Assembly (NCBI GenBank): GCA_001643675.2
Contig: LSRY02000009.1
Coordinates: forward strand, 868,001-932,000
Length of the DNA stretch: 64,000 bases
Origin: Monocercomonoides exilis PA203
Lineage: Eukaryota > Protista > Preaxostyla
Direction: 5' to 3'
The translations under genes were made by a program, and so were the position numbers. Shown here piece after piece: positions 16,286 to 50,202 of the stretch. The first letter of the stretch is position 1. Each line of letters begins with the position of its first letter. The notes under the pieces are model-generated. The model made no database searches, had not been told where the DNA came from, and worked only from the letters and a program-made list of their open reading frames with translations.

Positions 16286-16689
16286 AGGGGAAGAGGGAGA
16301 AGAGGGAGAAGAGGGAGAAGAGGTTAGAATTATCAGTCCGTTTAAAAAAGGAGTGGAGAATGTGTGTTTTCATCTGATATCATGGCATGACCGAAGGTTG
16401 ATTCTCTTCCTTCGATGATGTACTTTGCCAGCCATTTGTTGACTGGTTGTCTGTTTTTTTTATGCGGCAAGAGGAAATTTTGGAGGACAAGAAACCAAGC
16501 CGAGTCGATAATTACCAAACCATCGGAGACGGGAAAATATTTCAAGGCCAAAAAGATGGTTTGATTTTTCTTTTCTTTTTTGTTTTGTTTCATTCATTTT
16601 TCTTTTAAGATATTTTTTGAATGAATACGGAATGACTATGAACAGGAATGACACGGAAAGAAACCTGTTTATCCTTTTTCAAAAGAACC

Positions 16690-17000
16690 AGAAGTTTATG
16701 AGATTATTCTTGTTTGTATCGCATTCAACGACGGCGTTCGTGACTTCTGCCATCTGCCTTGCATGACGCATATCCTGTCAATGCTTTAGATGAGCTTGAA
16801 AGAGAGAAAAAGAAGTTTGTTTGGTATATTTGTTCGGAATGTTAGGCAGAAGCGACTCTTTTGTTGGAGCTGATAAACTGGCTGGGCATTCACATTCAGA
16901 GCACATTCATCTTTTTCAATCGATCATTCTGACTTGGAAAAGCTGATATCGACTACTTTTCTTCACCTTCTTCTTCTTCTACTACTACTACTACTACTAC

Positions 17001-17032
<32 letters not shown>

Positions 17033-18054: not shown

Positions 18055-18093
<39 letters not shown>

Positions 18094-18277
18094 TGGATTT
18101 ATCTGCAGCAAAAGAAGAAGTTGTATCTGAATCAGATTCTGCTGCTTGGAATAATATTGAAAAACAGAAGAAATTAAGAAAAGCATTTGATTGTGAGTAT
18201 TTTGTGGAGGAAAACGAGCTATGTTCATATGAAAAATATTGAAAACTGATAGGAAAAAATGTTTGGAAGGTTTGCAA
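16690..18277 (-). pseudogene. Fragmented coding remnants (possibly surface/beta-helix-type protein)
   Basis: Overlapping short minus-strand ORFs with higher GC and Cys/Gly/Ser content, interrupted by frameshifts and simple repeats. Confidence 0.3.
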
Positions 18278-25095: not shown

Positions 25096-25409
25096 TAATT
25101 ATTTATTGCTGTTTCCCTCCATTTCGTTTATTATTTTTAAAGTCGTTAAACTGCGCAGATTTGACAGGAACTTTGAAATGATGTTTCGGCTCAAAAAAAT
25201 TCTTTTTCACCTAAAGCATAAAAAAGGAATGTTTTTTTCAATAAAAAAATAAAACAAATACATATCACAGAAATAAAAGCTAAATACTAGCAAAAAATCA
25301 ATTTTTCTCTTTGAGCAATAAATACAACAATAGATTTTATTTTTTCAATTTTCGATCTTTTTTATGATGTCAAAAAAATTCACACATATATTTATTTTGC
25401 AAATCAAAC

Positions 25410-26191: not shown

Positions 26192-28002
26192 TCACTTGAA
26201 ATACTGAAGAATCCGCTTGTGGCTTTTTATTCGAACAAGATTTCCTAAGTTGAAGAAGAAGCTGTAAAAATGTAACAATGTAAAAGGAGAAAAAGATAAA
26301 GTGTAACAAGTGATAAAAAAATAAGATGAAAATGATGAAAATGATGAAAATGATGATGAAGAAGGGTCATTTGAAATCTGAATGCACGCGTCGATGCCAG
26401 TTGTTTCTTCGCTGTCTGCCAGCCCATTCCCCGAGAAAATGGAGAATCTCACTTGCCCGACACCTTCTGTGCTGCACTCCTCCTCGTTCACTGCTGCGCA
26501 TGCCCCTCTTTTCTCCCAAACATTCCTCTCCTTTTTCTTCTGTTCGAAATGTCTTTCTTTCTCGTTTTCTTTTCCTTCCCAATCCATCTCCCCATTCTCA
26601 TTCTCTTTCTCTTCCACTTCATTCATCATCATCATCTCCTTTGCCATCATCTCCCTCACCACCCAGTGCAGCCCTCCCCCAAACCCGCTGCTCTCACACC
26701 CCACCCACCAGCACTCCCCCATCACACACACCCCGCTGCACCCCTGCACAGAGCTGCCTCCACCCATCCCCCCTGCCACACAGCACTTCTCAAACTGGCA
26801 CCCCACAACACATGCTGCATCACTGTTGCTGCCTCCATTGCTTCTTCCTTCACTTCTTCCTCCTGTTGGCGAAGAAGGAGGCGCAAAAGAAGACACATGC
26901 AGTCCACCCCCTGCCACCCCCGCTGAGCACCCTGTGAAGTTCGTGCTGTTCGCACAGAAGCTGCGCCTGACTGACGTGGCACACACGCCTCCGCCGCTTT
27001 TCAGAGGCGATGTGCAGTTCGCAAAGGCAGACGACGAGACAAGGAAGGCGCCGAACGAACGGCCGAAAACAGCTCCCCCCGACGACAGCGCAGTGCAGGA
27101 CTGGAACGTGCAGGAGATCACACTCAGCGACGCATCGTCAATGCCCTGAACAGCAAGCGCTCCGCCGTCAAATGCGCCGCTTCCAGTTTGGTTCCAAATG
27201 CAGAACGAAAAAGTGTGGTTTCCTGATTCGCCGATTTGCTCCCGTTTCATTGTAGAATTCCCTTGCACACTTAATGTTGCTAAATGGCTGCACGCTATAA
27301 AAGACGTATTGAACGCTGAAAGTGAAGAAAATCCCGAATTTATGTCTCCTACGATTCCCCCATAAATCACATCCAACACACTCTCGAATCTGCTCCCGCT
27401 AATAATAGTCTTCCACAACTCATTCCCCCATTCTCTTCTTCCGAGCCCTTCTCCGTTCCCTGCCCTCCTGCTCATGTTCCGCATCTCGCATAAATCCACC
27501 TTCCACTCCCCTCTCCTCAAATCTCCCAAAAACGGACCACCACACAGTTCCATGCACTCAAACGAGCTCTGCTCAACACGCACTCTCCCAACATTCAACC
27601 CTCCATTTTTCCCCTCGCAATCTTGTACGAGCGGCCAGACTGCGCAGTTTGGATGATTTGTTATAACAGAAAAATTATTCAATAGCAAATATCCATTTGA
27701 CACCGAAAATGGCGAGCATCTGGAATTTCGATTCTCCACAACAGCATTGTAAACATGTGTTGATGACAAAGCGCAAATTGTGATAATATTTAGATTTTCA
27801 TATTGCAAGAAATAAGCACTACTTAATGTTATTGAAGAATTATATAATTTCAAATCTTCTCGAAAAGAAATTGAAGAATAAGCGCTCTAGAATTGTATCG
27901 AGAATATTAATAATAACGTTGAAGGATAAACATATAATAATATGAACAAATATCGAGGTATTTAACAATGAAAGTGAAAATAAACATATTGTCTAAAGTC
28001 AT
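26192..28002 (-). pseudogene. Truncated inverted copy of the 5' ~1.6 kb of the giant receptor-like gene at 51371+
   Basis: ORF 26192-27853 is nearly identical to the N-terminus of the + strand gene until ~26330, then diverges and stops. Confidence 0.85.
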
Positions 28003-28412
28003 ACATCAAATAATTCCCCCTTTAAAATTTTGCTTTTACAAGGAACATAAAACCGAATTGGTGTGCTAATAGCATCTAATGATGCAAAGAACAAAAAAAT
28101 AAAAATAAAAATAAAATTCATTAAGTTATGTAATGGGGCTATTAGCAAATCAACAATTCATATTCATTTTTAAAAAGAAAAAAATGAATTTCCCTTTAGG
28201 CTTCGGTGATGATTGAAAACATCTTTTAAAGATAATATTAAAAAATGAAAGATAGAGCTGTTGAAGATAAAATTGAGAAATGCATAAAAAATTCGTCCAC
28301 TCCGGGAATTGAACCCGGGCCATGAGAGTGACAGTCTCATATTCTACCGACTATACTAAGCGGACTTGTTGTTTTTGTGAATTTTTTATTATCAAGTAGT
28401 AAAATACGATAT
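26330..28412. repeat. Outer part of the left arm of a ~3.25-kb inverted duplication (pairs with 50961-~53040)
   Basis: Reverse-complement match (positions sum to 79373). Identical translated ORFs on opposite strands in the ORF track. Confidence 0.95.
28294..28365 (-). tRNA. tRNA-Asp(GTC)
   Basis: 72-nt cloverleaf: acceptor GTCCGCT/AGTGGAC, discriminator G, anticodon arm TGAGA-CTGTCAC-TCTCA, T arm CCGGG-TTCAATT-CCCGG. Confidence 0.95.
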
Positions 28413-28749
28413 GGGTAATTCTTTTTGAAAAGTCGCCACAGATCAAAATATTGTCCCATCGCAGTAAATATAAATACACTCCGTGACCATTATTCAACAT
28501 TTGTTTTTCATATTTTAAATTTGTGTTTTTTTTATCATGAAAAACAAAAGGATAAAAAAAAAACCTTTTTCCAAAAAAATTTGAATATTGCTTTTTGATC
28601 AATTTTATAAATTTGATTTAATGGTGATATTACAATTTTTATTTGTCATTGCACTTGCTTCTTTGCAACACATTTGTGGTGTAATCGATTTCAAGAGTTT
28701 ATGAATTGAAAAATCAGTTTGATTTATCAAATACTAAATTTTATAGTTG

Positions 28750-31700
28750 TTGTGTTTATCTTCTTTTAGAGAAAAGCGATTACGTTGGGTACGGACGAAT
28801 CAAGTTTTTGTTTCTAATGGACTATTCTGCATTTACTGTTTCATATGTGGAAGAGGATTTGCTGACATTTAAATTCAAAATTACATCTGCGGAACATTGT
28901 TTAATTACTGCTTTTTTCCATTACAATGCATGCTTAAAAGGCGGACATGACGCTATTCTCCAAAATTCTTCAGCTTATAACAAGTGATTCCACATGCTAT
29001 TTAACAAGGAAAACATCAAAAGGAGAAAGTGCAAAATATAACTCAGTTGATATGAGTGAACAGCTTAATTTCAAATGAGGAAGAATTAGATTCGTTTCAT
29101 TGGTTCAAACACAACCAAATGAAAATGATTTATTCACTTCCTCAACAACATCCAAACTACACCAGATGGCATTCTTCCAACACCTTTGATTCCGTTTAAA
29201 AAATTAATTCTCAACACATTTTTATATGGCACCTATTTCGATCCAAAGAATGACACATCGTTTGCTCCTGATTACGTCTTTTTGGTGTTGAGAAAAGGAG
29301 AAAAAGGTACAGAAAGATATTTGTTTGTTCATGCTCCAACTTCGCATTCTTTTATGAACAAACAAGAAGCGACATCATTCATAGAGAAGAGACAACTGAT
29401 TACGAGAAAATTGAGCACAATGAGAACACAACAGCATAAGATTCTTGTTTCTATAAAGCAACAGGAAATGAAAGAAATAAAGGAAATTCATCAAACGAAA
29501 ACAGAGTGAAAGAAGGAAGTGCCTTGATTGCAGCTGTTCAGAGAGAAGTTGAACAGAAAGGAGAGAGAAGCAACCCTTATACTCAGATTGACATCGCTTG
29601 CATTGAAATAGGCAGCATACCAAAGGTGATAAAACACATTCTATCAACACTCACTTCTTATGTGATGATGTTTACAGACATTTCTAATATTGTCATTTTT
29701 TTGGAGATTTAGAACAACACAAGGCAACTGATCACAACAAATTTCACAGAGATTTGTACTTCTCTAAATTCAGATTCAGATTCATATTCATATTCAGATA
29801 CAGCAACGTCACAAACAACGATGACTGCCACAGTATCATCGAATTCTGCATCCCCTTCAACACCTTCTGCTCCACCACAATCTTCAATAGCAGACTTGTC
29901 GTTCAGCATTCTGCAAGAAATATTCTCGTCAGCTGCAGATGTTGTGCATTTCTTCCTGTTTAGCTACTCCTTTTCCTCCTCTTTCAAAGAAATGCCTCTT
30001 CTTTTCAATGGTTCAAATGATCAAAATACTCATTTCCTGCTATTTGAGTCAAGAAAAACAATGCATCGAATTATGCAGCAGCAGACAGAACTGCTTGTGA
30101 TGAGAAAAGAGGAAATACTGAATGAGATGCAGACGCTGAATGAATGGCTCAGATTAGTTGATTTGAGTTCTAGACATTCAGTTGACAAAAGAGGAGGAAG
30201 AATTGGAAAGAGCCATTCCACCAAATGTAATTGTGACAGGTTTCATCAAAGCAAAGTTTACCCAACTGCAATTCTTGTTGGAGCTTAATTCTGCTGACAA
30301 ATGGAGATGAACAGATAGTCCTAAAAATGTAATTCAGAAACAGATAAAGCTGATTTGCTTGCTTCATTTCCAGCTTTTCTTGATACGCAAAAGCATCGTC
30401 ATTGTTATGGATGTTCTTGTGCACATTTCAACAGACAACTTGGGTGTGTCTATGCTAAAGATATCTGAATTCTCAGAAATGGCAGGTGCTCAGATGATGG
30501 CACAAGGCGGGAACTACGAATGGCTCTGCGAAATATTCTCAGAGCGGGAAAAAGCGAAGATAGAAATCAAAACAAGGAGGAGCACTTTGCAGACGAATAG
30601 AAACGATGAAGGAAAAGGCACTGCCAATGAGTCAGACGAAGCACCACAAAATGAGAAAGCCACATCTTCTGATGGAAAAAGTGTGCATTCAGGAAAAGTG
30701 ACAGAATCACAATACAAGGCAAACATTGCGTTGCGGTTTATGGAACAAGAACAAAATGAGAAGGATGCATTTTGATACAGAAAGAAAAGATTGCGGCAGT
30801 TTCCAGGTGCTGATTCTTGCTCACTCAAAGTTATTTTCTCACCTTCCGTAATTGACATATTTGACTATCCAATTGATGCATTCGCGTGCGAGATATCGTC
30901 ATCAATGCTCATAGAACAAGAAAAAAGAGCATCATATTTTGAGGCTACTCTCATTTTGATAGAGTCAATCATCACTTTCATCTATATCATGAGGAGCATG
31001 GGAGTGAATATTGAAGGACTCCCAAATGACCAAACAGAAGACGAAGAAAATAACAACCAACAAGATGGAAACGAAGAAGTCGACAGGCATTATCATAAAG
31101 ATGAATCGAGAGAAGAAGGAGTTGGAGTTGGAGTTGGAGAAGGAGGAGAAGGATCATTTGAAGAGGGAGCTATTGAAGACGAAATAGAAGAAGAAAGGCA
31201 GATAGGAAGACAATACATGGAGAATGAGAACGAGCCAAAAAGGGAAAAAAGGAAGGAATTGGAAATGAAGATGGAGACAAAATTGAAATAAAGCCTCAAC
31301 AACAACCACACAAAGAAGTTGAATGCAAAGAAACAAAAAATGCAACTTGTTTTGAAGGCACTACTGTTCTGCGGACGAGCGATCTTAACGAGTTTATTAC
31401 ACAGCATACACACTATCGACCAGAAAACTCTGCAGAGAAGAATTCTTCAGTTGCGGTCGAAGCGTTTCAAACTCTTTCAGAGATACAACACAAGTCGTCA
31501 GAAAATAAGAAAGCCGAAGAAAGTCAACAAGAAGACAACGAAAATGCTTTGACATTTTTCAATAAAGCAGAAAGAATGAGATTAAATAGCTGAATAGCAA
31601 CTGTGGAAGAGAATGTTTGATTGTTGAGCCTGTTGTTGGGAATACAGAAGCTGAAGTGATGAAATACACAAGCGAGTGGGATCAACGTCATACAGAAAGA

Positions 31701-34700
31701 GAAAAAGAAAGAGAAAGGAAAAGAAAGAGAACGGGATATGATTTGGGTTCATCTTTGGCATTTCAAACAAACAATGCAAGCCATCTTGACAGCATAACGT
31801 GGAGAGAAAGAAGATGGATGATGTGGGAAGGAAAGGTGCTTCAAGTTGTTTGCCGCAAAGTTGATGAGCCTCCAGTGTCAACAATACGTGAAACTAACAT
31901 GAAAAGATTACAGGAATACTTGATTAAAAAGAGAAAGAAAGAAAATGAACAAAAGTTGACGAATATTAAAAATAAACTTTCGAGCAAGTTTTTTGGTTCA
32001 CAAAAGAAGCCATACGAAGATGAGGAAGTGAAATCCACTAGCAGATTTGCACTTGCAAACGAAGAGGTTTCAGAATTGTGTGCGAATAATAACGGGCAGA
32101 TTCCAACAAAAGAATGCATTCAAGAGCTTACAAAAATAAGTGCAATACATCCCACTGTTCAGAATCAGAGCGGAGGTTACTATGAAATCCACAGATTCAC
32201 TCGCTCGCCTGATTCTTCACCTTCTGGATATATCTGTGATTTTATCATTCCTATTCTTACGGCTGGCCCTCGCTCCACATTCTGTTATGCGCTTTTTACT
32301 CTTCCGCTTTCTATTTCTGAGGTTCTTTCTTCGAAGATATCGTTAAAGCCGATCATCAAAGAGATTGTTAAGCTTTCTTCGAAGATCACTGTCTCCAAAT
32401 TGAAGTGGATCGATACAAATTCAAATGAAGAGATGAATAACTATTGGAAGAACATGTACACCAAACAGGCAACGCCACAAGAAGAAAAAGAAAAAGAAGA
32501 TGGAATAAACGAGAGCGAATCTTCGTGCAAAACTACCAAAGTTGCAACTGTTGAATCACAGATATCAAATGGCGGAGCATCCAGAGAAAGAAGAATCGAC
32601 AAAAGCTAATGAAAAAAACTTACAGCAGGAAAAGAAGAAAAAACAGTATCTGAATCAAAAATGAATGGTGAAATCGAAAAGAACAGAAAATCGGAAAATT
32701 TGAAAGAACCAAACGATGAAGATGTTGGAAACAAGGAGCAAATTACTTCTTTGCGGCAAGATCCATTTCTTCCACTTTATGAGCATTATCATTCACACAC
32801 TTTGAGCAGCATTCCTTCAGGCACTTTTGTAAACAATGTGATTCTTTCTTCACCAAATGAAGCACTTTTGCTCGAAACAAATAATAAAACATTGCTCTGT
32901 ACTAATGCCACCACAACTGTTCTTCTCTCTGAATTGCTCCAAAATTGCACAAAGAACATTCAATTGCTTGATGGAAATGATTCTTCTTCAAGCAATAAGA
33001 ATGGAGAAGATAGAAAAAATACCGGTAAAGCATCACTTTCAACAATTGAATCTGTTTCAAATCAACTTTTGCCTCTGAAAAGTCCATTTGTTCCTCCGCC
33101 ATCTGCAATTTGCCATTTTACAGTGGATGACTTTGCAGTAGTTGTTGAATGCCGACGGATTGAATGGCTTGCAGATACTCCAAACAGAGCAGAAGTGGAG
33201 TAGGAAAGCCCACTCAGAGCGAAACTATGGCTAAAAGAGATTGTGGAAGGAGAGTACATCGCAGCATAGGCGATGTAGTTGACTGTTCCACTTCATCCTG
33301 GAGCGTATTGGTGCACGGAAACAGAAGCCGAATACTGGGAGTGAATCAAAGATGCGATGAAAGAGAAGTATAAATCAATGGATAATTGCATTTCAATCAC
33401 AGAATTCTTTACTATCAATCCGGATCATTGCTTCTTTGAACGTCTGGCTGAACTTCAAGCACTGACAAAGTTTCTCGTAGGAATGTTTAAGCCAGTGATG
33501 ATTTTTGGAGAAATATCGAACGGAGAGAAGAGGATAAAAGGATGGGAGATGTTTGAAAGGCTGAAGGAGCTGAAAGAAAACAGAGAGACAATTCAGCGTG
33601 TTGTCAAAAGAAGACAAGATTGGCCAATGCGACGAGCAATGCAGAAAGAGGCAGAAAGAATAATGGAACAAGACAGAATGACGTGGGGTCATCAGCACCC
33701 TCTCAAAGAAGAGCACAAAATGTTGATCTACATGCAGATACCAGCGAGCTTTGACCAAAAGCTCAAGATTCTCAACTCTCTGGCCTTTGAACAGAAGCAA
33801 AAGTTGTATCAGTGGCCAAATAGAACGGCAGAGATATCAGAAGAAATAGCACATGACAAAGCAATCATTCGGAAGTTCAAACGAGAAAAGCTGCGAGAGA
33901 TTAAGGATCTTCTCAGCAAAAAGACATTTTTGACACGATTGGAGAGGAAAGGCGAGGAGAAAAAGGAGTTAAACAACTTGAAGCATCTTCTGAAGCAACA
34001 AGCAGCACATCTCAAATACCAGAAACAAGAAGAAAAGAATTCCTTCTTTAAAACGATTGATAAGATTTTGAATGGAAGCCAAAGAGGTCGCAGCGAGATG
34101 CTTGTAGCACCATCTCTTTCTTCTTTTAAAGAAGGATTAGTTCGAAGACGCAGAATATCAACTTCTCTGTCTTCATCATCCTCAGCAGCCATGTCGCCAT
34201 CTCTGGTCCTTTCACCTTATTCCTCCTCTTCAAATTCAGAGTCGCCTTTCAGTCATTCATCTGCTCATCCGCTTTCTCTGTCGCCTCATCGTTCGCGATG
34301 CCATCACCACCACATCCACGTTCACCATCCCAGAAACCACAGAAAGAGCACACAGAAAATACAAAATTCTGCTTTTAATGCGAAGAAAGCTACTCGCCCA
34401 GATAAGAAATCGAAACGGAAGCTAATTCCAAAAGCGAAGAGCCAAATTTCACCATCTTTGGAAAAGGAGAAGTTTTATAGTGATGAAAGATTAACCAAAT
34501 TGCATCAAATAAAGAAACTAGCTTGCTTGTGAAATCTTCCGTGTTCAATTTATTGGATCGCAATTCATTATCACCTTCATCTTTGTACTCGTCGCATACT
34601 TCTCCTTCTCGCTCTTTCTCAATAAGATGTGAGTCCACTTCGTCCATTTGTTCCACTCTCTCGTGTGTTGAGCTTCCGTGGGAAGAGGCTGCAGAATATT

Positions 34701-36440
34701 CAGAGTCAGACGAAGAATGTATGCTCCAGGAACGACACGTCAGGAAGATGGAGAAGAGAATAACCATCAGGCAGCAAAAATTAGCAGAGCGGAACAGAAA
34801 ACAAGAGCTGAAAAGAAGACTGTAGAGGAAGCTCAGAAAGGAGCGATTCTTCATCTTAAATGGATTCAGCATGTGAGCCAGCTCAGAGAGATCAACGACA
34901 TCAGAGAAAAGATGAAGATTAAAGAAGAGCGGTGGAAACCTATTTCCAGAGAAACAAAAGCAGAGGAAAAGAAAGCGATTGATTGTCTGAAGCGACAAAA
35001 AGAAGAAATGCAAAAGAAACACACTTCAATCGAAAAACAGTGCTCGAAATTGATCGATCAAATTGTTGAGCTGAGAAAGAGAATCAACAAACTATCTTTG
35101 TCAACTTCTCCAGAGAAAGAGCCAGATGAAAAGAAGATGATGAAAGTGGAACAAAAAGTATTCCAAAAGATCAGGAGTTATGAAGAAGGAATGGATTGAG
35201 AAATGAATGAAGAGCAAACAAAAAGCGATTTGGACAAAAACGACAAAAGAAAGCTATCAAAAACTCAACCAGTAGACACTACAAATTTTATTCCTCTTAC
35301 AACAATTGCCAGCATTTTGGAAGCAGAGAAGAAGGAAGAAAAGGTTGCAGAAGCCGAAAACGATTCCAAAAATGATAAAACAAAAACAGATGAAAAGCCA
35401 ATATATAAATTGGAAGAAAGTAAAGAAGAATAGTAGCTTATAAAAAAAGAGCTAACAAAGCAAACTGAGGAGGAAAAGGGAAATGAGGAAAGCTCTATTC
35501 TTAGCAAAGGGGATCAATTACCATCACAACAAACTCAGAAAGAGCCAGAAGAAGAGCAAAAATTAACAAAAGCGGAAGAAGCTTCTGTCGAAGAAGCCAC
35601 GAACAAAGCAAACACAGCTACCCAATCAGAAGACATTGAAATAATAGACACAAGTTTGAAGACTTCGAAGCGTTCGTCGACGTCTCCATAAGACAATGAC
35701 GAAGACGATGATGATGACCTTCCATTTTCTCGTCTGAGAAATGGAACAGCCTCTTCGCGAACGAGGCTGTTCACTTTGTCCTGCCTCACATCTTCCATCG
35801 TCGCTTCGATGAATCGCAGCAACGATCACGTTTCTTTATCAACACAGGCATACTTCTTCTCGGCTCTCTCAACGATGATTTCTGAGCTGCGTTGCGAATA
35901 CCCTTTTCCACCGCGTTCACGCTCACCCAGAAAGCCCTCCTTCCATCTCCTCCATTGCCCCTTTTCTTGAATTATTTGAAGAAACGAAGACACAGAGAAG
36001 GCAGACCGCGACTCGGAAAAGGGTCAAAGCAGTGCGAAAGAGCAGCAGAAACACTGTTACAGATGATGAGCGTGCAACTGCTCACTGAATCAAGAGGGAA
36101 TCTGTCAAAAGGAGACAAAAGAAAGCTGAATCAGCTGGAGAAGATTCTGAATGAAGGCGAATAGGGGAACAAGAGAGGCAACAGTCCAAGCGACAGGATT
36201 ATGCAAATAGCGATGAAGATGGACGAGATGGGGAGAAGCAGAATTCATAACCATTGGAGAAGAAACGACAGTGACGACGACGATTCAGACAGAGACTTTG
36301 ATGGAGATTTGGATGAGATTGAAATGCTTGTGAAAATGAGGTAGTTGGAGTCGGATCGTTTACGAGATAATCAAAAAGAAGGTTCGTAAACAGATATCGA
36401 ACCAAAAAGAGAAAGACAGAAGATAATGATGAAAATTTAT
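28750..36440 (+). pseudogene. Large disrupted uncharacterised gene carried as cargo in element A
   Basis: Chain of + strand ORFs (29186 ... 31617-32609, 33357-34532 ... 35892-36164) joined by many in-frame stops and several frameshifts. No domain recognised. Confidence 0.7.
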
Positions 36441-36573
36441 AATTGGTTGCTTTATTTGAACAATTGTTTATGAAACGATAAACTATTGAAATGGAGAAAA
36501 TAAATAAAGAAAGTTATCAGTCGATGCGTGTCGTCATAATCTGATGAACTCAAAATGTTTGTAATGATACTAA

Positions 36574-39282
36574 TTAAGTGGAACTGCAACCATTATCTTC
36601 ATCTTCATAATCTTCTTCATCTTCATAATCTTCTTCATCTTCATAATCTTCTTCATCATCATTGTCTTCTTCATTATCTTTTTCTTTTTCTTCAACGTCA
36701 TCGTCTTCGTCTTCTTCATCAGAAAGAATAACAGCTTCCTTCCTTCTTTCATCATCTTCAAAATCTCATTGGCAAACATTTTGAGAATAAGTGCATCTTG
36801 GTTCATTATCAAAATTATCTGTTTCTTCGTCTGTTTCTTCTTCGTTTCTCGGGATTTCAAAACGCTTGCACTTTTCTTTTTTCCCTTCATATCTTCCAAG
36901 AATAAGTGCAAGCGTTTGTTTCCCAGTGGGAAATGACAAGCAAGAATACTTCTTGCTTGTTGCTTGTTTCTTTGCTCTTTCGAAAGAAACAGCAACCCTC
37001 ACTTCACTCCATCTTGTATTTTCTTCTTCGTTGTATGGAGCAGCGAAAATTCTTCCTTCTTCGCTGCTCCATAAAAGATTTAATTTTAAATCTTTAACCC
37101 TCAGCTTCGGTGAGACTCTCACCTGAAGCCGAGGGGTGTATGGGAGGAAGTGCCTATTGATTGAGGCACTTCCTATCTCATCTGTTGATGAGTCAAATCT
37201 TTTTTTGAAAAAAGAGATTAGCTCATCAACAGATGAGATGTCCTCTCGAGAGTTCCGCGTTTCTCTCGAGAGGACCCCAAATTCTCCATCCACTTCGCTT
37301 TTTCCGTGACCTTCAGCAAAAAAGGAAAGCGAAGTGGATGAGAATTTTTTTAAAACAGAAGATGAAGGATAAAGAACAAAGTGGAGGAATGCTCCATTTC
37401 GAAAGTGTGGGCCACAATCAGCCCACACTTTCAAAGAGGTTATTTGTTTAAATTGATTTTTTGTTTTACTGAGGACTGTTTCAAGGCAGTCAACTGCGTA
37501 TCTGCTGTCTTTTGATAAAACAGTTGAAAAGAAGTTGAAACAATTTTTGACAATAATGTTTTTTTGAATCATGTAAACAATTATTCCCAGATGAGAGACT
37601 TCTTTCTTTTCATAGAAATCTCGAGATATTTGAGTTTGTCTGATTGGAAGAGTCCAGTTTTGCTTGAAGTCAAGCAAAACCAGAATCTCACTTTCTTTTA
37701 GCTCATCAAGATTTTTGTTGAACTTTTCTCTTTCTTTCTTTTCAATAATTTCGTGCTTTTTCAAGATTCTTAATTCTTCCTTTTCATCATCTGTTAATTC
37801 GTTTGTTTTCATTTTTATTTCCAAACAATTCTTTCGATAACACAGATTGCATATATCTGTTCTGTTTTTTGATTTCTTCACGTGTTTAGACATTTTGCAA
37901 AAATGAGAAAAACTTATATTTAAACCTGTTTCTTTTCTCATATTTTTCCAAAGTTCATATTTTGTGGAAAAGAAAATTCTTTCTTCATTCTTTAAAAAAA
38001 TTCTTCCATCTATTTCATTCATCAAATTTGTGTTTCTATTGATACAATCTCGTTCGAATATAATACGGTTTTTTCTCTGTTATTCTTCTGTTGTAAGTAA
38101 AGTTGTTTCCTTAGAGATAAATATGGTGGATGATGCAACTGGTGCGGATGATGTTAACAGTGAGATAGATGAGTCAGAAGATGTGAATGAAGAAAATAAA
38201 GCAGATGAAGCAGACGAGGCAGATGAATCAAATGAGGCAGTGGAGCGAGCTGGTTGTGCTGCTAAGGCAGAAGGGGTGAATGAAGAAAATAAAGCAGATG
38301 AAGCAGACGAGGCAGATGAATCAAATGAGGCAGTGGAGCGAGCTGGTTGTGCTGCTAAGGCAGAAGGGGTGAATGAAGAAAATAAAGCAGATGAAGCAGA
38401 CGAGGCAGATGAATCAAATGAGGCAGTGGAGCGAGCTGGTTGTGCTGCTTAGGCAGAAGGGGTGAATGAAGCTGATATTGAATTGATGTTGAATTTGTTC
38501 CTAATTGTTTTTTGTATTTGATCTTGTTCGATATATGGATATTTAAAAGTGTTTGCATGTGAAGTAGATAAATTCGTTGAATTGGACAGTTGAAATAAAA
38601 TGGGTGAAGAAATGTTCTCAACTGTCAAGTGTGATGGATTTTTCAAAAAATCAATATCATCATCTGACAAATCAATGAGTAACTTTTTGTTTTTTTTTTG
38701 AGTTTTACCACTTTCAGTTGTATTCCGCTTTAACCACCATTCACAAAATAGAAAATCATAATTCGATAAAGCTGAATATTTATATTATTTTATTGAAGTT
38801 AAAGATGTGAAGTGCAAACGATTTCTAACTTTTGGTAATGCTTTTCTTTCACTGTTTTGAACAGAGTAACCGTGAAGTTTGAGCATCCGTTTTGCATGGT
38901 CAACATTATTTTTTGTGCAATTCCATTGAGAATTGCGCAAATCTTTTTCTGTAACAGCATTCAAAAACGACTCCAACAAAAGAATCTTGTTCTTTTTATC
39001 AAGAATGTCGTATAACAAACCGGAATGAAACAGCAATTTGTTAAACTTTTCTATCCATTGAAAACGATTTTCAAAATTATTTTTTAATGACTGAAAATAC
39101 TAATAGATACAACCATTCAATGCTTCATTCAAATACTGCAGTATTTTGTTTCCTTCCAAAGAATGCTCCAAAAAATATTGAATGAACAATTTTTCTTCAT
39201 TTTTTGTACAAAATTGTAAAAATTTGAAAAGTTCTTCACATAGTTGAGATTTCCTGCTTGAAGATAATTGCGAAAAAAGCAT
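36574..39282 (-). pseudogene. Sola-like DDD transposase gene with in-frame stops
   Basis: ATG at 39282; 48-nt intron GTTTG...CAG 38819-38772. Otherwise one continuous frame with TAG 39100, TAA 38449, TAA 38080 and TGA 36766, then an acidic tail to TAA 36574. Core motifs DICNLC, LLDFKQN...FY, WADCGPHFRN and FFAEGHGKSEVDGEFG resemble Sola (closest to Sola2 HGK..xDG) transposases, from memory. Confidence 0.8.
38183..38471. repeat. Three 93-bp tandem repeats inside the transposase (31-aa Ser/Ala-rich units)
   Basis: GTGAATGAAGAAAATAAAGCAGATG... recurs at 38183, 38276 and 38369, with a partial copy at 38462. Confidence 0.95.
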
Positions 39283-40719
39283 TTTTTAAAAAAAATTTCT
39301 TTATTAATGGGAACGGAATGATCAACATTTTTTGATCATTTTTGATCTAATTTTCAGATCAGTTAAACGTTTGCGACTTTTCAAAAAGAATTACCCATAT
39401 GGCACTTTCTTTTTGAAAAGTCGGAAAACTTTAATTTGCCACCCTTAAAAGATCACAAAATTCAAAAATTCTATTTTGTTGTTCAAATCAATTATCTGCT
39501 GTTATTTGTCAAAAAACTATCATTTTCAAGTTGTTCTGTATTTAAAAAAAAAGAAATCAATTATTCTTTGCATATTATTATTATTTATTTTCGATCAATC
39601 ATAGTTATTCTGTGAGTTATTGCAATGAAAGAAAGGCACAATTGGTAGAAATGATGGAGAGCTCAGAATAACAATTGATTTCTTTAAAGAAAAACACGCA
39701 AACTTTGTTGAAATTCTCTTTTTTCAAAACAAAATAAGGAGTTTGAATATGTGATAAATTTTGCCAATATCACAAATCAATAGTCAATTTTTTGAAAATG
39801 AAGGTGCAAATTTTTTTAGTTTGTTTTGAAATTTTCATTTTTGGCTTTTTTGTAATCAGACGTACACATTTAATCTTTATTTTGAAAAAAATTGTTAAAG
39901 TTTTGAATTTGAATTACAGAACAAACAATGAAAGAAGTTGAAGAATGAAAATTTTGAAAACACTTTAATGGTAGTTTCTTACGATCAAATGTTCGCCCCA
40001 ATAGCAGAAAATGCATCTCTAAAATAATTTTTCATCTGAATTATCGGTTTCAATGTCTCCTGTGACTTCTTAGATAAATGACAATGCATTTCATCCATCT
40101 TCCGCAACCACAGCTTCTTTTCCTCCTTCTTTAAGAAATTTGCCTGATTCGCGTACACGCTTATCAAATTACAACCTGTTGCTAATGAAGGCCAAAACGA
40201 TGAGAAATATGAATGAAATGGTTTACAGACGCCAACGCTCTCGCGCTTTCCAGATTCATGAACATAAAACATCAAATAGCAACCAACTTTTTCACAAATC
40301 TCTTTATAACCATAGTTATGGAATCAGTCTTTCCCTCTTTTTCTTCACACTATTGAATGCCGTTTCATTGCTCCGTGTATGCTGAATACAATTGAGACAG
40401 AAGTTGTCTACAATGATTACTACATCATTCAAACAGCAAGCAGCCAACGAGTGAAGAGGAAGAGGAAGAAGAAGAATTAAAAGAAGAAGAAAATAAAGAA
40501 GAAAGAAGCGGTTGATGTGGTTAGGGTGCTGCTCATAGGCAGTGCAGCAAAAGAGAAGGAAGGTATCAGCTGCTGTAGTTTGAAAGAAGAGCTTGTGGAA
40601 TATGCAGATGAAGATGTTGTTGTTGCCACACGGGCTGGACTGAAATAAACTTCTTTCCTTCTCCGCTATTGTAGCTCGTCGTGGGAAATTTTTCAGTCAT
40701 TTTTGCCTTCGAAGGATGT

Positions 40720-41277
40720 TTAATTTCTTTTAAGCACAGTTTGCTTTAAATGCTTTATTAACATTTGCGGGTCGCATATAAACTTCAGCATATCGAGCAC
40801 CGACTCTTTTTTCTCAATTATCACCACGAAGAAGAGCATCGCAATGATCTGCGAAAAGTCCACGGAGAAATGCGGAATGAGAGGCATCACATACAAAATG
40901 AAGCGGTAGTCTGCGAGCACCCGGCGATACACCCTGTTCATCAGCTGCATGATGATGTTCTGCCTCCTCAGCACACACATCAGCACGGCTAGGTCACCCA
41001 GAAGAAATTCCAGTGCACAGATCGTCCGTATCAACTGGAATAGAGTGGAAGTCGACTCCACAGTAATCAGGAAGATGATCGACAAGCCCTGTGCAGTGTT
41101 GCTCATTCCAGACGTAATCACTGCCAATCTCTGTTTTGTCAGGTAGCTGTCGAACAGGTCGTGCACGCAGCTCATCTGCAGAGCAGAAGAGGAGGAAATA
41201 ACACTGTTGTTTTTGTTGCTATTCCCACTTCCATTGCCGCTGCGTGGCGGATAATTAATGTGCAGTTTGTGGTTCAC
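40720..41277 (-). pseudogene. Unidentified gene fragment (cargo of element B)
   Basis: 185-aa ORF with globular-like composition and higher GC. Neighbouring frames are broken. Confidence 0.35.
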
Positions 41278-42299
41278 TTCATCTCTGGTTTTTCAAATGT
41301 TAGGCTGATTGCATTTTTTTCTTCGTTAGTTTTCTCTTTTTTTCTCTGTCGTCTTTTCAATTTGCACTTCTTTTCCACTTTCTTTTGACTGCTCCATCTT
41401 CTGCATTCAAATTACTCTGCACTGAACTTCCGCTTCTTCAACCACATTAACAAGAAGAGCCAAAAACAGAAGCAGAAGAAGGTGATGTGGTTGCATTTGC
41501 AATTCCGCCAGCCCCAGAATACGACTAGATCCTCCCCCGTGTGCAGAACGACTTGTGCGGAGTACGTTTGAATGATCGCACCTGATGATAAAACTCGCTG
41601 TACAAGTGAGACAGCTTCAGCATAGCGTAGACGCCTGCTTCGCCATGCAGCGAAACGCCTCCAAAGGCAGAGGTGAGGCTGATGCAGCCAAGCAGTCAAA
41701 ACACAGTCGCACGCTGCCGCTCAAACTGTGCAAAGGGGGAAAGAACTGCTGGAACGTCAGCCCTATTGCACTCGCCATATTCAAAAGGAGTGTTATTGCG
41801 AAGGAGAGCTGGCTGCTCAAGGCATCGAAGTTGCGATATTGGCTGCTTGTGCAATTATTGCTTCTACTTCTGCTATTGTAACTGTAACTGCAACTGCATC
41901 TTCGGGATGGTGCCGACTGTCTGGCTTAAGAAGAGTGAAGGGGTTGAAAAAGGAGCTTTTACGTGCAAAGACAAGTCAGAGTCCATAAGCTGGATCTGCA
42001 GGTTGTGTTATTGTGCTTGTTGTAGGTGCAGCAGCAGCAGCTGTTGTTGAAACGGAACCTATTAAAATTGCATATGCAAAGCTTCACCTCTGTTCACGAC
42101 AACTCTGCCAATGTTATCAGGAGCAGAAGCCGGTTGAAGATGGTCTGCTTGAGCAGTCGCATTGATTAGAGTTTCCCGTGCACGTTGAACTCCATATGCT
42201 GATCTTCGAATACATTGAAGTGGATATGAGGGCGCTGCTTGAAGAATGACGGGGCAGAAGAGAGGGGAGGGGATTCATGGTAAGATGATAAAGAGGAAA

Positions 42300-43192
42300 A
42301 AGAAGAGGAAGTGAAAGAAGAGGAAGTGAAAGAAGAGGAAGTGAAAGAAGAAGAGGAGGAGGAAGAAGAGGAAGAAGAGGAAGAAGAGGAAGAAGAGGAA
42401 GAAGAGGAAGAAGAGGAAGAAGAGGAAGAAGAGGAAGAAGAGGAAGAAGAGGAGGAAGAAGAAAGCAATGAACGAACAGTTGCTTATTCGGGCTTTCTCG
42501 TATGCCTCCACTAATTCTGCGTGGCGGACTCATCAAGACACAAGACACACGTCGTCATCCACAAGAAACCTCTTCCATACAACTCGGATCACTCTTGTCA
42601 CTCGCATCTCTTGCATCATTCGTTCCACAACTCGCAAGGTGACAATTGTACATCCTTCAAAACCGAGCAAAAAGCTAACAAGCAGCTGGATGATCCACAG
42701 GAAGATCCCCCTAAGTGTCCTCGTTTTCTTCCGAACTTGTCTTAAGAAAACTCATTTGACGCAAAGGAAAAGAAAAATCAGACGCTTGTTATTTCTCCGG
42801 CACTTGTTCCTTTTTGTTTGTAACCAGAGACGATAACGCAATGTGCGTTACAGGTTATGGGAGTGCTCACGTCCAATAACGAAATGCCAAGCCTTTTGAG
42901 CTTCTCCTCTTTGGCGAGGCAGATGCGGTATAGATGCAGCTTTAGAAGAAGCAGAACACAAATATTTGCTGCCAGAAAAGGATGAAGAAGCATTTATGAT
43001 GTTCAGTCAAGCGAATCGCTGGGTAGCTCAGAGTTGGAGAGGATAATGAATTACTGGCAGAATCCGCGGAAGACGTCATCGGAATTCAACAGCTCCGTAA
43101 TTTTCAATACGCAGCTTCCAGTGAACTTCTTCTTTTTCTCGATGCAGAAGCATGAACAGTGCCTTCCAATTACAACAAATAATCCTCCTTGA
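42300..43192 (+). pseudogene. Unidentified poly-Glu-containing gene fragment (cargo of element B)
   Basis: One frame continues through several in-frame TAA/TGA after the (GAR)n tract. Confidence 0.35.
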
Positions 43193-43659
43193 ATTCAATA
43201 AATCTTCTATTGCATTGAATTGTTGATGCAAAAGAAAAATAATAATAATTAATACGTAATTATTTTTTATTTCAAGTAACTGTTTTTCAAAATAATCAAC
43301 AAAAAGAAATGCAACAAACATCGTTATTTATTTATCAAAAGTCTTTCCCATAAAAGAAACACAAAATATTGTGATTCATGCTATTTATTTCATGAAACAT
43401 GTTTTGAGTCATTTTCTTGCAACTAAATTATTAGCATGTTAAATTAAACAACACAATTCAAAATATAAAAAGAATGCATATATGAAAAATAAATAAAAAG
43501 CTTCACAATGCTTTTGATAGATGAAAACAGGAAAAATAAAAAAAAACCTCCTATCAGATTAATTATTAAAAATTCTATTCTGGTTTATTCAAAAAAAAAA
43601 TAAAATGCAAGAATCGTGTTATTTACTAAGTTTGTGCTTTATAGAAACATTAATGTAAT

Positions 43660-43723
43660 TTGACATATTATTTGTTATTTGATGGAAAATAATTGCCAGA
43701 TGATCTCTGATTTTTCAAAAAGA
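43660..43723. mobile_element. Degenerate internal copy of the element B right subterminal sequence
   Basis: GATCTCTGATTTTTCAAAAAGA at 43702-43723 equals 48310-48331, with weaker similarity upstream. The terminal AAGTGCC is absent. Confidence 0.55.
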
Positions 43724-44479
43724 TTTTTAAACCAGTTAATTTTATTCTATATTCATGATACCCATGTTGAGAGTCTTTCTTCTTTCCGGTTTGTTTTTGA
43801 AATTTGAAATTTTGAAAAACTATCACATGAAAGGATTGTTATTTATCAAAGATCAATTTTTGATAATTTTAGAAGGGTCTGTGTGAAGGGAAACAAACTC
43901 TGTGAATTTTAAATTATGAAGTGTTTAGATAAGGGTTTAATTATCTTTTGGCGTTATGTATTAGTAATCTTGTTTCAATTTATTTTTCACATATAAAGCA
44001 AAATGCATTATTGAGTGAAGAGTGTTTCTTATATCTTAACTCATTCACTCTGATTGCAAATGAAATGCTCTGATTTTCTTGGTTTGTTATTGCTGGAGCG
44101 TTCATCGTTTTTATCCATTTGAATATTATTATTGTATGTTCTTTTGGATAAGAATTTGAATTGTTAGTTATAAAATACATCAGATGAATTAAGTCGTGGA
44201 GAAAAGAAAACAAACGTTGAACATTCATTGTCACAGCACATACCAAAAAATTCTCCGTTCAAATTGAGCGTTTGTTGAACACATTATTAATGACATTTCT
44301 CCTTCAAGTACAAAAATTGCATATCGACCAGACATTGAAAAACCTTCATTTTTTTTTATTCTCCTCATATTCTTCTTTCACAGAATCTGCTGAGATTTTT
44401 TTGGAAAAGCCGCTGAATACAGTGTTCTTTAGTTCAAGGCTTCCACTTGAGTGTTAGTGAAACCATAAACAGGTTGTTA

Positions 44480-45540
44480 ATATGTGGAAACGATGAATGT
44501 GGAGAATAGATCACGGAGCGGTGTTGCATGTAAACTAGATGAACATTCACGGTAGTTGCAACAACCTACTGACAAATAGATCTGATCGAACGAAGAAGCA
44601 TCTGCCTGTAGAAGGACCCAAGCGAAAGCAGCTCGAGCTCAAGATACTCTTTTGCAGGAGAAGAAAAGTTCAATAAAGGGAAAAATGAGAAGCCTCTGTA
44701 CTTGTTGTTTCTAGCAGTTGATGAGATTAACAGGATATTGGACTTTGGGTTTAAGCCAGATGTGGAGAGGATTATGGAATTCACCTTTGGATTACGTCAG
44801 GATGCTTCAAACAGCAGCAAAAAAAACAGAGAAGGTGAAAGTGAACATGACAAAGCATTCTTTGGATGGCCTGATCCAGCACAAAGCCCATCTTTGCCAA
44901 TTCCGTCACAGTCGCCGCCTCCAGTTTCCTTCGGATCATTTTCTTCCTCCTCCTTCCTTATTCGCAAGGCCCGACTTCTTCCTCTGTCAACCTCTCCGCT
45001 GATATTTTTGACCAACAGTCCTTTTGTTCTCTGCGACATTGCCGCTGTGGGTCAACCGTCTGTACCGACACTTTTTGCGTTGAAAGCCTAATTCAGTGTG
45101 GGTTGTTCTCGTGGAATCAGGTGTATTAGCCGCAGCATCAAGCGTGAAGCAAAAAGAAATGAAAATCTAGTGTGAGAAGCTAAGTGGAATTATTGGAAAA
45201 TGTTCAAGGACTTTTGAGAAATCTACAGATTGTTCGTCATCTTTTCTGACAAGAAGGCCTAGGCAAGCGCGCTTTGTGTGTGCCGTTGAAGTCTTTCCGC
45301 TGTCATTAATCGCATGGCTATTTCACCAAGGCTGATAGGGAACAGACACTGAAGTCTTTTTTAATGGGTTCCATTTAAGTAACTTTTACAACAGATTATT
45401 ACCAACGAAAGACATTGATTATCCGCAAATTGAACCGATTATTGTTATATTTGCACTAAAGAAAATAGAGACTGACGTTTATTGTTCTGGAAGAACATGT
45501 TGATGCATACGAGGACGTATATGCATTGCATTGCATTACA
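44480..45540 (+). pseudogene. DEAD-box RNA helicase remnant (cargo of element B)
   Basis: Degenerate motif Ib (TVVATT..IDLIERR), motif II region LAVDEINRILDFGFKPDVERIM, motif III VLLFSATLP (~45018-45044) and a motif V-like DIDYPQI, spread over different frames. Confidence 0.75.
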
Positions 45541-47199
45541 AAATATAAGAGTTCTCCCTGAGATGATAGAAAGGAAGAGCTGATTTCGTTACGAGCACAT
45601 TTCGGCTACTTCAGTAGTGCAGATGATATGAGCAGTTGGAAATGATGGCACAGAACAGATTGTGGCTGTTTCATGTTAACTGATTTCATTCTTCATATAT
45701 GTTGAACAGCTGACGGCAAAAAACTTGAGGAAGAAGAAACAGATGATTAAAACAGAGCTGAACGAAGGGGAGAAGATTTGTGAGGAAAAAGATGATGAGG
45801 ATTCAAAAGACGAAAAAAAAGAAGAGGAAGGAGGAAAATTATTGAAAAAGAAGCTTAATGAGGAAGTCAGAAACATAACGAGAAAAAGGAAAGAAAATAT
45901 GATGAGGACGCAGTAAAATACTGCACAAAGAAAAAAGAAAGGTTTGGAAAGAAAGCTTAGCAGAAGGTGTTAATTATGATGCCTCATGCCGATTCACAAA
46001 AAGTTGGAAACAAAAAGAAACTTCAATTGTTTTATTTTTTTTCCTCTCAATTGCTTTCGCAGCAAGGGAGGAGAAACCCTTCCAGATCTGGTCATCTGGG
46101 AATGCATTGTACAATCTTCGCGCTTTCTTCCCATGGAGTATGATCTATTTTGTGCAGCGCAGCAACTTTATTCGGATAGAAGATCATCTATTTTTTTTTT
46201 TCTGTTTGAAAAAAATGGATTCATTTGTCAGTGCATCTGACTCGTGCTGCTTTTTGTCTCAGACAACTGTTTCAGAGCTGCCGAAGCTTGTCGCCAGAGA
46301 AGAGGTCTCTGCTGTAATCAGGGAGCGAGACAAAAATGTAGGGCGGAAAGGAAGAATCAAAGGGAGAAGCATCAGAGGAGGAGGGGCTTTTGGAAATTGG
46401 AGTGAAAGCAGGAGCAGTGAAAGATGTGGATGAGAAGAAAGATGTTTTGATTTTGGAGGTGGGTATGGAGAATGTGGATCGAGTGGAGGATATTGCAGAA
46501 GAGGAGGAGGGGGAGGGGTGGAGGAAAATGAAATATAACATAAATCAGCTTTTTTGAATCATGCTTTTTCGAACTGATTCGACATTTAATCAACTCAATC
46601 ATTCATATTTTGCATTTATTATATAATTTCAACTTTTCTAAAATTTTAAAACATTTTATTTTGAAATATGCAAAAACAACAAAAGCTTGCTTTTAAAAAA
46701 TATTGAGGACAAGTGAATTTTAAACATGAATATTCAAATATGAAAGAATTGCTCAAAAAAAAAATTGCACATTCTTTATTAATATAAGGAAAAAACTTAG
46801 TGACGCTCAATATGACAAAACTTAAAACTCGATATCTGATACAAGAGGAAATGTGATAATGTTCAAAACCAAACTTTGTTGAGAGAAGCTCTCTCAATAT
46901 TACAAATGAAAATAATGAGATCGGTTTGGAAACAAAAATGTTTTTCAAACAGAGAACACTTATATCCTGCATTTATTCACCTTTCAATTTTTGAACATCC
47001 TTTTCTGTTTGAAGTATTCACAGTTGGGCTTTGCTCGCCATCTTATGTTGTTTCCTTCAGGTCAATTGCATTCAACATCTTCACAAACGCTGCTCTTTCA
47101 CTTAAGTTCCCAACAAACAAAAGCTGCAGCTCGTTCAGAATCTTCCACTCTCACGCTTCTGATGGAGTGTGCACTTCAGCAAACACAAAATATGATGAG

Positions 47200-47821
47200 A
47201 CGCTAGCTACTCAAGATTGGACTCTCCAAGTTCGCTTTTTTCTTCCACACATACTTGGCTCCATTTTCCCTAAAATTGCACTTTTAGCGTCAGACATCCC
47301 AACAGCATCGTCCCAATCGAGAATGCAACAAAGCTCTTTGTTGCTCCCATCTTCTTGTTGATCACCAGCTCAGGTGCCTTCCACATCAAACACTCATTTC
47401 TGAATCCTTCATCATCTTCAAACGCTGATGAAGGAGGAGGTGAGTCTGTGAATCTCTCGCTCATCAACGAAATATTGGAGGAGGAAGAAACAATGCTCAA
47501 TGAAGAGATTGAAGACGAATCTGAACTGTCATCAGAAGAACACTCAGAGTGTATCGCAATGCAGATAACCATGTGTTATGAGAACAGCAATGGGAGACTC
47601 AGTTTGGTCAATGATTGAAGTGGGTTTTCCATTTCGTCAAATAAGTGGAGTGCTCCATTTGCCACCCAGAATAATATCTGAGCAGCTGTTCGTTCTCTTT
47701 CTTTCAATGAATCAATTACCATCCTTTTCTTATCATTTTTTTCACAAAGTTGAATAAACAGCTGAGCAATTTTCACAAAAATAAGTATTGTTCTAAGTGC
47801 CGTTTTTTCAACTTTTTTCAA
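47200..47821 (-). pseudogene. TKL-like (pseudo)kinase C-lobe fragment (cargo of element B)
   Basis: ILFWVANGALH..., ECLMWKAPELV, VAFSIGTMLLGCLTL (subdomains VIII-IX). In-frame TAA at 47576 and a premature stop at 47270. Confidence 0.75.
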
Positions 47822-48841
47822 AATGATAATTCTAAAAATACAAAAGAATGATTAATTTGTTATTTTCTTTTGTTAAAAAATGATTGTTAAAAAAATAAAA
47901 CAACAAAAAAGAATAATGACAAATTATAGAACATACATGATAAATACAATTTCAATGCAAATGATAACTCATTTTTTGATTCACGCTCTATTTTCAAACA
48001 AGTGTACAATCACTCAAATTATTGTTTATTATCAAAGAATAATGAATTATAAGTACCATTAAAAACAGTGTAATAAAAAGATGTTTGAAAAACATACTAT
48101 GAAACCAATGACTTCTTCACATATCAATGAAAATATGAATTGTTAATAAAAAATCAATATCCCTTAAATTTTTATATTACAAAAAGCTATTTTGGTTTGG
48201 GAAAAAAGGAAAAAATGAGAAATGTATTTTGCTTGTGATAAATATCAAAATTGTGCACGATCGTTTTTGGATATATTATAATTTATTTGAAAAAAAACAA
48301 TAACGGGAAGATCTCTGATTTTTCAAAAAGAAAGTGCCATATATTAATCAAGATGTTGTCTTTTTTTCTCTTTTTTTTTCATTTTATTGTTAATTGATTT
48401 TTATTTAGGTTTTGTATTATTATCCGATGTTTTCCGGTTTGTCATGTTCCTTTTAAATTTAATATATTTATATCATACAATTTTGTTGTTTGGTATTTTT
48501 GAAAAAGTTAGGATAAATCCTTTTGATGAATTTGAAACATAAGTTTTTGAAAAATTTTTCTTTTATAACATTTATTCTTCTTTTTAATGAATTATTACAG
48601 CACGCATAGCATTTTGGAATTAAATATTCCAATCACAATAAAAGAATAAAGAGGCTTTTCTCTCATAGAAATTTTTATGTATTTCGAACATTCATTTTAT
48701 CCAAAAAGTTTGATTTTGTGTTAATTATTATTATCACATGTAAGATTACAGAAAATCAGTTATTGATCATTACCTTTTTTTCATTGGAACCTAAATTTTA
48801 TTGATTATTCCTAGCTATTAGAACTCATTTTATAAAAACAT

Positions 48842-48865
48842 GGGTAATTTTTTTCCAAAAGTTCC
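48842..48865. mobile_element. Diverged element-A-type end (mirrored at 50438-50461)
   Basis: ACAT + GGGTAATTTTTTTCCAAAAGTTCC versus ATAT + GGGTAATTCTTTTTGAAAAGTCGC. Confidence 0.55.
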
Positions 48866-48885
48866 TTTTGTTTAATTTTCAAATA

Positions 48886-48927
48886 GGGTCAGTAATTTAT
48901 CATATCCACTTTTTTTTATCGAAACCT
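48886..48927. mobile_element. Diverged pogo-type end (mirrored at 50376-50417)
   Basis: TA + GGGTCAGTAATTTATCATATCCACTTTTTTTTATCGAAACC versus TA + GGGTTATTATTTTATCTTGACACTTTTTCTTTATTCTGACC. Confidence 0.5.
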
Positions 48928-49100
48928 AAATTTTGTGGCTCACAGGAGCACTTTTCGAAAAAAATAAATAATAGAATACATTCAAATTATTTTTATTTAC
49001 TATTCCTGAGAACATTTTTGATTTTTTTGATTTTTTTAATTTTAGTGAAAAGATCAGCCGTTTTTTGTTTTATTTTTTTAGATCAAAGACTTGCTCATAT

Positions 49101-50202
49101 GGGACAAAATATTTGACTTCAGGCATTTTCATTGAAAAATTATGCACATCAGATGAACTTTTTGTGATCAAAAATTTGAAAAAAAATGGGTTTATTTTTT
49201 GAAATACATGCGATGTCACACAACATGTTGTTATTATATCAATGATATTTGCTTGCAGATATGAAAATCTTATTTATTTTGATATCTGGTTTAGTTAAAA
49301 AAATGTTATAAGTGAAACAATTTTTTCAAACTTTGTGCATAAAAAGCTTGAAAGTCCATATTTTCCCCCATATTTTCACGAGCTTTTTGTTTTGAGATTT
49401 TTTAGTGTTGTTATTGTTATTGAACAAAACTTCTTTATAATTTTGGTTATTTTTAATTGTTAAACACTTCGTTTTTTTATTATTTTTTGTATTTCACTAA
49501 ATTTCGACAAATTGAAGATTTTTTTGTGACAATTGAATCACTTTGTTTATTTATGTTGAAAAACAGTTGAAAAAAAGGATTGATATGATCGTCACAAAAA
49601 TTTTGAAATAAAACAACATGATTTGAAGCAAAGAAAGTGATAAAACGCAAATACAAGTATTTCAGTTTTATAATCACTGTTATAAAAATATAGAGATTTT
49701 TTTCCTTTTGCATATCTTTATTTATTGATAATTGATATATTCACCCATTTCAATAAATGAAAAAACATATTTATTCAATTACATTCTTCAATTTGTCGAA
49801 ATTTAGTGAAATACAAAAAATAATAAAAAAACGAAGTGTTTAACAATTAAAAATAACCAAAATTATAAAGAAGTTTTGTTCAATAACAATAACAACACTA
49901 AAAAATCTCAAAACAAAAAGCTCGTGAAAATATGGGGGAAAATATGGACTTTCAAGCTTTTTATGCACAAAGTTTGAAAAAATTGTTTCACTTATAACAT
50001 TTTTTTAACTAAACCAGATATCAAAATAAATAAGATTTTCATATCTGCAAGCAAATATCATTGATATAATAACAACATGTTGTGTGACATCGCATGTATT
50101 TCAAAAAATAAACCCATTTTTTTTCAAATTTTTGATCACAAAAAGTTCATCTGATGTGCATAATTTTTCAATGAAAATGCCTGAAGTCAAATATTTTGTC
50201 CC
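49101..50202. mobile_element. Element E: ~1.1-kb foldback MITE at the palindrome centre, flanked by ATAT
   Basis: ATAT-GGGACAAAATATTTGACTTCAGG ... rc-ATAT; 418-bp arms with a 266-bp spacer. The boundary is independently defined by the relative ending at 2573. Confidence 0.7.

Follow-up and report, generated by a model that had tools for sequence, protein, structure and literature searches.

How two large transposons come to abut at a single 4-bp target, and what they carry, is the question raised by a stretch of 64,000 nucleotides of Monocercomonoides exilis PA203 (contig LSRY02000009.1, positions 868,001 to 932,000), which we call the window and in whose coordinates positions are given unless another locus is named. 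Here a pair of elements, A and B, splits one of the arms of an inverted duplication of 3.27 kb. We concluded, with a probability of about 0.85, that A and B belong to one Sola2 family, that each is mobile on its own, that they inserted sequentially, and that their interiors are passengers.

The order read at the locus is ATAT-[A, 10,984 bp]-ATAT-[B, 8,938 bp]-ATAT. The junction sequences place the three copies of the target-site duplication (TSD), which have no strand, at 28409-28412, 39397-39400 and 48339-48342, the middle one being shared by A and B. The left palindrome arm is split into an outer part (26318-28412), holding the 5′ part of a kinase gene and a tRNA-Asp (28294-28365), and an inner part (48343-49518). 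Across a spacer of 266 bp, the right arm (49785-53059, with its tRNA-Asp at 51008-51079) is uninterrupted, and comparison of the arms shows the empty site, a single unstranded ATAT, at 50961-50964. This is exactly the arrangement that the initial annotation of the window had described. The empty site settles the 4-bp target duplication beyond doubt, and ATAT flanks around relatives at three other loci (L007, L008 and L009) bear it out. Inside position 26478 the two arms differ by a single mismatch (28140), and their remaining differences are concentrated at the outer edge. An insertion age based on arm identity was rejected, because such clustering is expected under arm-to-arm conversion. The empty site is faithful but gives no date for the insertion, since the arms appear homogenised.

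A (28413-39396, reverse strand, 5′ end at 39396) is bounded by perfect 24-bp terminal inverted repeats (TIRs; 24/24), the 3′ TIR at 28413-28436 on the forward strand and the 5′ TIR at 39373-39396 on the reverse strand, as first described. B (39401-48338, forward strand, 5′ end at 39401) has its 3′ TIR at 48308-48338 on the reverse strand; the 31-bp TIR reported for it is imperfect, with 19/19 matches and then 27/31. These four ends, two of A and two of B, are the only full ends in the window of the family pattern GG-N5-T(C/T)TTTTTGAAAA. Both ends at the joint are 5′ ends, because the transposase of A starts next to 39396 and because at L001 the B-type end (7378) lies immediately before a transposase of 47% identity. 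The pair, previously called a tandem, is thus head-to-head and not head-to-tail. Its two 5′ ends are alike at 27/34 positions, and the joint forms a 72-bp imperfect palindrome (39363-39434) with the shared ATAT at its centre.

The elements were originally described as Sola-like, with a protein at 36766-38025 put forward for comparison with Sola1, Sola2 and Sola3. Membership of the Sola superfamily is supported, and the type appears to be Sola2; the transposase frame is longer than that protein (~39282-36576, reverse strand) and is broken in the window copy. Its open reading frame (ORF) of 419 amino acids at 36769-38025 has 863 relatives at E ≤ 0.001. Residues D119, D203 and D246 are conserved in 99-100% of ~150 homologues, among which a DxCxxC..H motif and HGK are also nearly invariant. 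The spacing is D(84)D(43)D, compared with D(87)D(43)D in Sola2_DFa-2 (by eye, from the supplement of PMC3627910), and the proteins of Sola2_DFa-2 and Sola2_PPa-1 share these motifs, which follow one another in an identical order. On these motifs and this spacing, compared by eye, we assign the transposase of A to the Sola2 type. A structure model of the ORF (predicted local distance difference test score 85.5) has an integrase/mariner-type RNase H fold, matching Metnase and Mos1 over 169-171 residues with Z 10.7 and a root-mean-square deviation of 2.9. The Pfam match to DUF7869 was weak and below the cut-off, and a PDB sequence search gave no match. Sola2 elements typically, though not strictly, have 5′-GRG termini. 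These had been invoked for the pair, and they fit A, which begins GGG, and not B, which begins GGC. The rule is not universal, because the published PPa families of Sola2 begin (T)GTT (PMC3627910).

The window copy of the transposase is dead. It has nonsense codons at 38451, 38082 and 36768, all three absent from the sister copies at L007 and L008, whose open transposase frames span 682 and 835 codons. A non-standard genetic code was rejected: the standard code gives an open frame of 4,171 codons, and other copies have TGG where the window has TGA at 36768. Two short introns near the 5′ end of the gene are probable, and two stops common to all copies are probably intronic, because they are located at the frame change of L001 and inside GT-AG stretches. 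The linker contains a 93-bp tandem repeat (38172-38471, reverse strand) whose unit number varies among copies. At the corresponding place, a related metagenomic transposase (P0004, L002 616-3069) has an insert that by eye resembles an OTU-type cysteine protease (DGECG...HYW) and has no Pfam match.

Solo copies carry the argument for separate mobility. Full-length copies of A stand on other contigs at L007 (5032-15913) and L008 (5023-16401); they are ~97% identical, their TIRs are perfect, an ATAT stands at either end, the flanks are unrelated and B is absent from both. A relative of B at L009 (3797-20429), 82-88% identical over most of B and 72-74% in its 3′ part, is likewise flanked by ATAT at each end, and no A adjoins it. 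Because each occurs alone with its own ATAT duplications, A and B are separately mobile, which supports two sequential hits on one target, one of the two routes initially proposed. A mosaic relative at L006 (7519-16848) has an AACT duplication, and AGGT is probably used by relatives as well; the family duplicates 4 bp of the form ANNT, mostly ATAT. Its ends are widespread: at 39400/39401, dozens of read contigs (38 and 22 in X1, 47 in X2) depart from the window sequence and continue into unrelated AT-rich DNA. No family-type ends were found in L005 (MONOS_18616) or in the short contigs L002-L004. The same ends also occur with other interiors: in L001, and in L009, where A-type ends enclose an unrelated 7.2-kb interior. 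Together with the presence of the A cargo in three copies plus L006, this is what is seen in Pack-TYPE elements.

Smaller and nested elements accompany these copies. A 269-bp miniature inverted-repeat transposable element (MITE) with GGG ends and an ATAT duplication lies at 49101-49369, with a mirror copy whose 5′ end is at 50202; it is present in both inner arms, whereas A and B occupy only one. Its relatives lie at 2301-2575 in the window, at L008 16810-17085 and at L009 12078-12322. A foldback element of ~1 kb (3713-4720), with 368-bp arms that are 98.6% identical and start ATAT|GGGG, has a spacer of ~270 bp, resembling the 266-bp spacer of the large palindrome. At L009, the B relative lies within an inverted duplication (3121-20815; 386 bp, 98.7%), and the locus also holds a MITE that further insertions have split; one of these is the 7.2-kb A-type element, flanked by ATAT(T) and ATAT. 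At L007 17971-18210, 2 kb beyond the A copy, lies a family MITE of 240 bp, one of whose ends has decayed; this MITE and the far end of A enclose 13.2 kb between ATATs, a substrate ready for another round of capture.

B is non-autonomous. No transposase match was found within it, so it would have been moved in trans. Its first cargo segment (approximately 40000-43100, reverse strand) is a decayed multi-copy host-like coding sequence in which an ORF (40720-41277) is 73% identical to MONOS_17680. Contigs from an RNA library match B exactly at 40534-41479 and almost none match A at 37288-39257, although such contigs cannot prove transcription. The second segment (approximately 44300-46500, forward strand) is the relic of a DEAD-box (DDX21-like) helicase, whose L001 counterpart matches Helicase_C at 1e-11 and GUCT faintly. 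The third (47000-47760, reverse strand) is what remains of a giant receptor kinase gene at its kinase-domain end; a host paralogue was found for it, a 3,359-amino-acid PK_Tyr gene in L006 (tblastx 52-70%, E 9e-44). Helicase and receptor-kinase relics thus lie within the TIRs and TSD of B, as host fragments do in Pack-TYPE elements, and the proposal of a family of large elements carrying host-derived sequence is upheld by these relics and by the solo copies. Between the first and second segments lies a dead internal 3′ end (43218-43730, forward strand), in which the TIR core survives and the terminal GG is gone; over 520 bp it is 59% identical to the working 3′ subterminal region of B. The same dead end is present in L001 (17044) and L009 (7333).

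The cargo of A is one very large decayed frame of ~7.5 kb (approximately 28814-36345, forward strand), convergent to the transposase. Searches of Pfam and Atlas recognised no family in it, and homologue searches returned M. exilis copies only; blank searches with this cargo say nothing on much longer parent genes. Many of its stops are common to all three A copies, and some are read through in L006. Compared with L006, its pooled ratio of nonsynonymous to synonymous substitution rates comes to 0.43, lower than the 0.67-0.80 expected under neutrality (0-6 of 300 simulations gave a value as low); the cargo is therefore a formerly selected gene that has become a passenger. Blocks of variants that only one of the A copies has agree with L006, a pattern pointing to gene conversion between family members. 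Dating from the 2.9% divergence between copies was rejected, since much of that divergence lies in conversion-like blocks.

Both the low ratio and the stops read through in L006 would also be expected if this frame were an accessory gene of the transposon, comparable to Fanzor1 in dictyostelid Sola2 and inactivated just in the copies at hand, rather than DNA captured from the host. The frame is broken in all four copies, however, no domain was recognised in it, and unrelated interiors stand behind related ends in L001 and L009. Selection could moreover predate capture, or its trace could have entered by conversion from a live gene. An accessory gene is therefore unlikely, although of the alternatives it survives best.

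We propose the following order of events, including a source of transposase in trans and a route of capture. A first element would have inserted at an ATAT in the left arm of a pre-existing palindrome, and a second, in opposite orientation, at one of the two resulting ATATs, giving a head-to-head dimer with three ATATs; which came first is not readable from the TSDs. B would have been mobilised in trans, and the transposase of A might have been broken before or after its last jump. The interiors of both would have travelled as passengers, dead pieces of host genes. B itself might have grown by a two-element route: once an inner 3′ end had decayed, a 3′ end lying farther out would have served instead, so that the helicase and kinase DNA in between was incorporated. 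Copies may afterwards have exchanged interior tracts by gene conversion. As observed in double-insertion dimers, the pair has one TSD between intact ends, the same TSD on its outer sides and solo monomers elsewhere.

The other route first proposed, that A and B arrived in one step as a 19.9-kb composite mobilised through its two outer ends, the inner ATAT being older, fits less well. A strong preference for ATAT makes equal inner and outer TSDs uninformative, and B itself looks assembled from two joined elements. Yet each of the three further copies that we examined stands alone, neither inner end is damaged, and the composite would need two 3′ ends, from different subfamilies, to act together. 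Such a dimer would still require an earlier double insertion elsewhere, and on the evidence of the solo copies we rejected this route as improbable.

A role for tRNA genes in the choice of site is still harder to sustain. The insertion site lies 43 bp upstream of tRNA-Asp, as would be expected if RNA polymerase III genes were targeted; no tRNA was found in five family loci (L001 and L006-L009) or in L005. An Rfam search returned only the two tRNAs of the palindrome arms. Such targeting is not supported, and we treat the proximity as local chance. Least probable of all is that misassembly brought two repeat copies together at this junction. Both ends occur in many copies and none of the listed contigs spans 39400, but three exact ATATs face an exactly matching empty site, the assembly was built from long reads (PMC8767320), and 39726-40065 of B is covered by an exactly matching read contig at about single-copy depth.

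Several observations weigh against sequential insertion of mobile, passenger-carrying elements. A poly-A run near the 5′ end shifts the transposase frames at L007 and L008 by +1 or +2, and as assembled neither is a fully intact transposase. No functional parent was located for the large frame that is the cargo of A or for the helicase relic in B. The two-element model needs a relic 5′ end inside B, unless this has since been deleted, and only weak AT-rich matches to such an end were found. Finally, among the read contigs listed none bridges the joint between A and B, which therefore rests on the long-read assembly. Because contigs break in repeats, this lack is neither support nor refutation.

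A further idea, which we consider doubtful, is that the family homes to an ATAT beside an existing family end and not to any ATAT, with dimers as the step that leads to fusion, loss of inner ends and uptake of host DNA. If so, stacking and cargo growth would be one process, and the family would be one of the chief forces that shuffle gene families in this genome.

The window has other features as well. Two paralogous genes (72%) lie at 13118-14335 and 19533-20739; the L001 element contains a member of their family (13608-14416), another lies next to L008, and the two genes are possibly the source of transposon cargo or copies from it. A Pogo/Tc1-like element (23075-25098), bounded by 43-bp inverted repeats, has a DDE_1 match (E 6.5e-15) at 23217-24308. 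An open frame of more than 4,170 codons (51487-64000) has a weak kinase match near residue 3,500, and the left palindrome arm contains a truncated duplicate of its 5′ part.

Unclassified repeat makes up about 35% of the M. exilis assembly and to a large extent overlaps kinase genes (PMC8767320). The locus shows that part of this repeat consists of Sola2 elements that carry and copy dead gene pieces, including the kinase relic, and that the annotated genes MONOS_9158, MONOS_13310, MONOS_2288 and MONOS_17680 are transposon passengers. In our literature searches, neither the capture of host fragments by Sola2 nor the presence of Sola in oxymonads was found to be reported, in keeping with the initial annotation, which knew of no such elements in metamonads. 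Pack-type capture by Sola2, and Sola2 in an oxymonad, therefore appear to be new, and Pack-type capture is thereby extended to a metamonad. No mechanism is new: second-gene carriage by Sola2 (PMC3627910) and dimers sharing a TSD (PMC5932611) are both published. The elements had also been called giant, and sizes of 11 and 9 kb are real; the novelty was overstated, as dictyostelid Sola2 elements of 10.3-15.3 kb are known (PMC3627910).

Those dictyostelid elements (DFa-1/2/3 and PPa-1/4/5), which contain a second gene, are the closest known system (Bao and Jurka 2013, PMC3627910). Like them, A shows the motifs NRTDxCxxC..H, DFKxN, WxDxxxHF and HGKSxxD with similar D spacing, and the M. exilis family has 4-bp TSDs of the AWWT type, ATAT included, and shared ends around variable interiors, with the transposase lost in some members. 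Their TIRs are short (12-22 bp). Unlike the dictyostelid elements, whose passenger is a Fanzor1 gene, A and B contain dead host fragments (helicase, kinase and the giant frame), have ends beginning GGG or GGC and reside in an oxymonad. An AWWT TSD is a hallmark of Sola1 (PMC3845634), and ATAT fits it while AACT does not; it is reported for Sola2 too (PMC3627910), and the protein motifs match a published Sola2 protein.

In a review of Pack-TYPE elements (PMC12187468), non-autonomous TIR elements hold pieces of several host genes, as B does. The review also relates the Pack-CACTA model of Catoni et al. (2019), in which two neighbours are jointly excised after their inner ends decay. The dead internal 3′ end of B fits such two-element capture and would be the footprint that the model predicts. 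The superfamilies listed there are MULE, CACTA, hAT, Harbinger and Mariner, mostly from plants, and not Sola. A, a broken copy that keeps its transposase beside its cargo, fits the non-autonomous description loosely. As for the pair itself, P elements form double-insertion dimers, inverted ones included (McGurk and Barbash 2018, PMC5932611), in which two intact elements likewise share one TSD and which arise from target preference. Unlike those, the pair described here is a head-to-head heterodimer of two large subfamilies, with the empty site kept in the sister arm.

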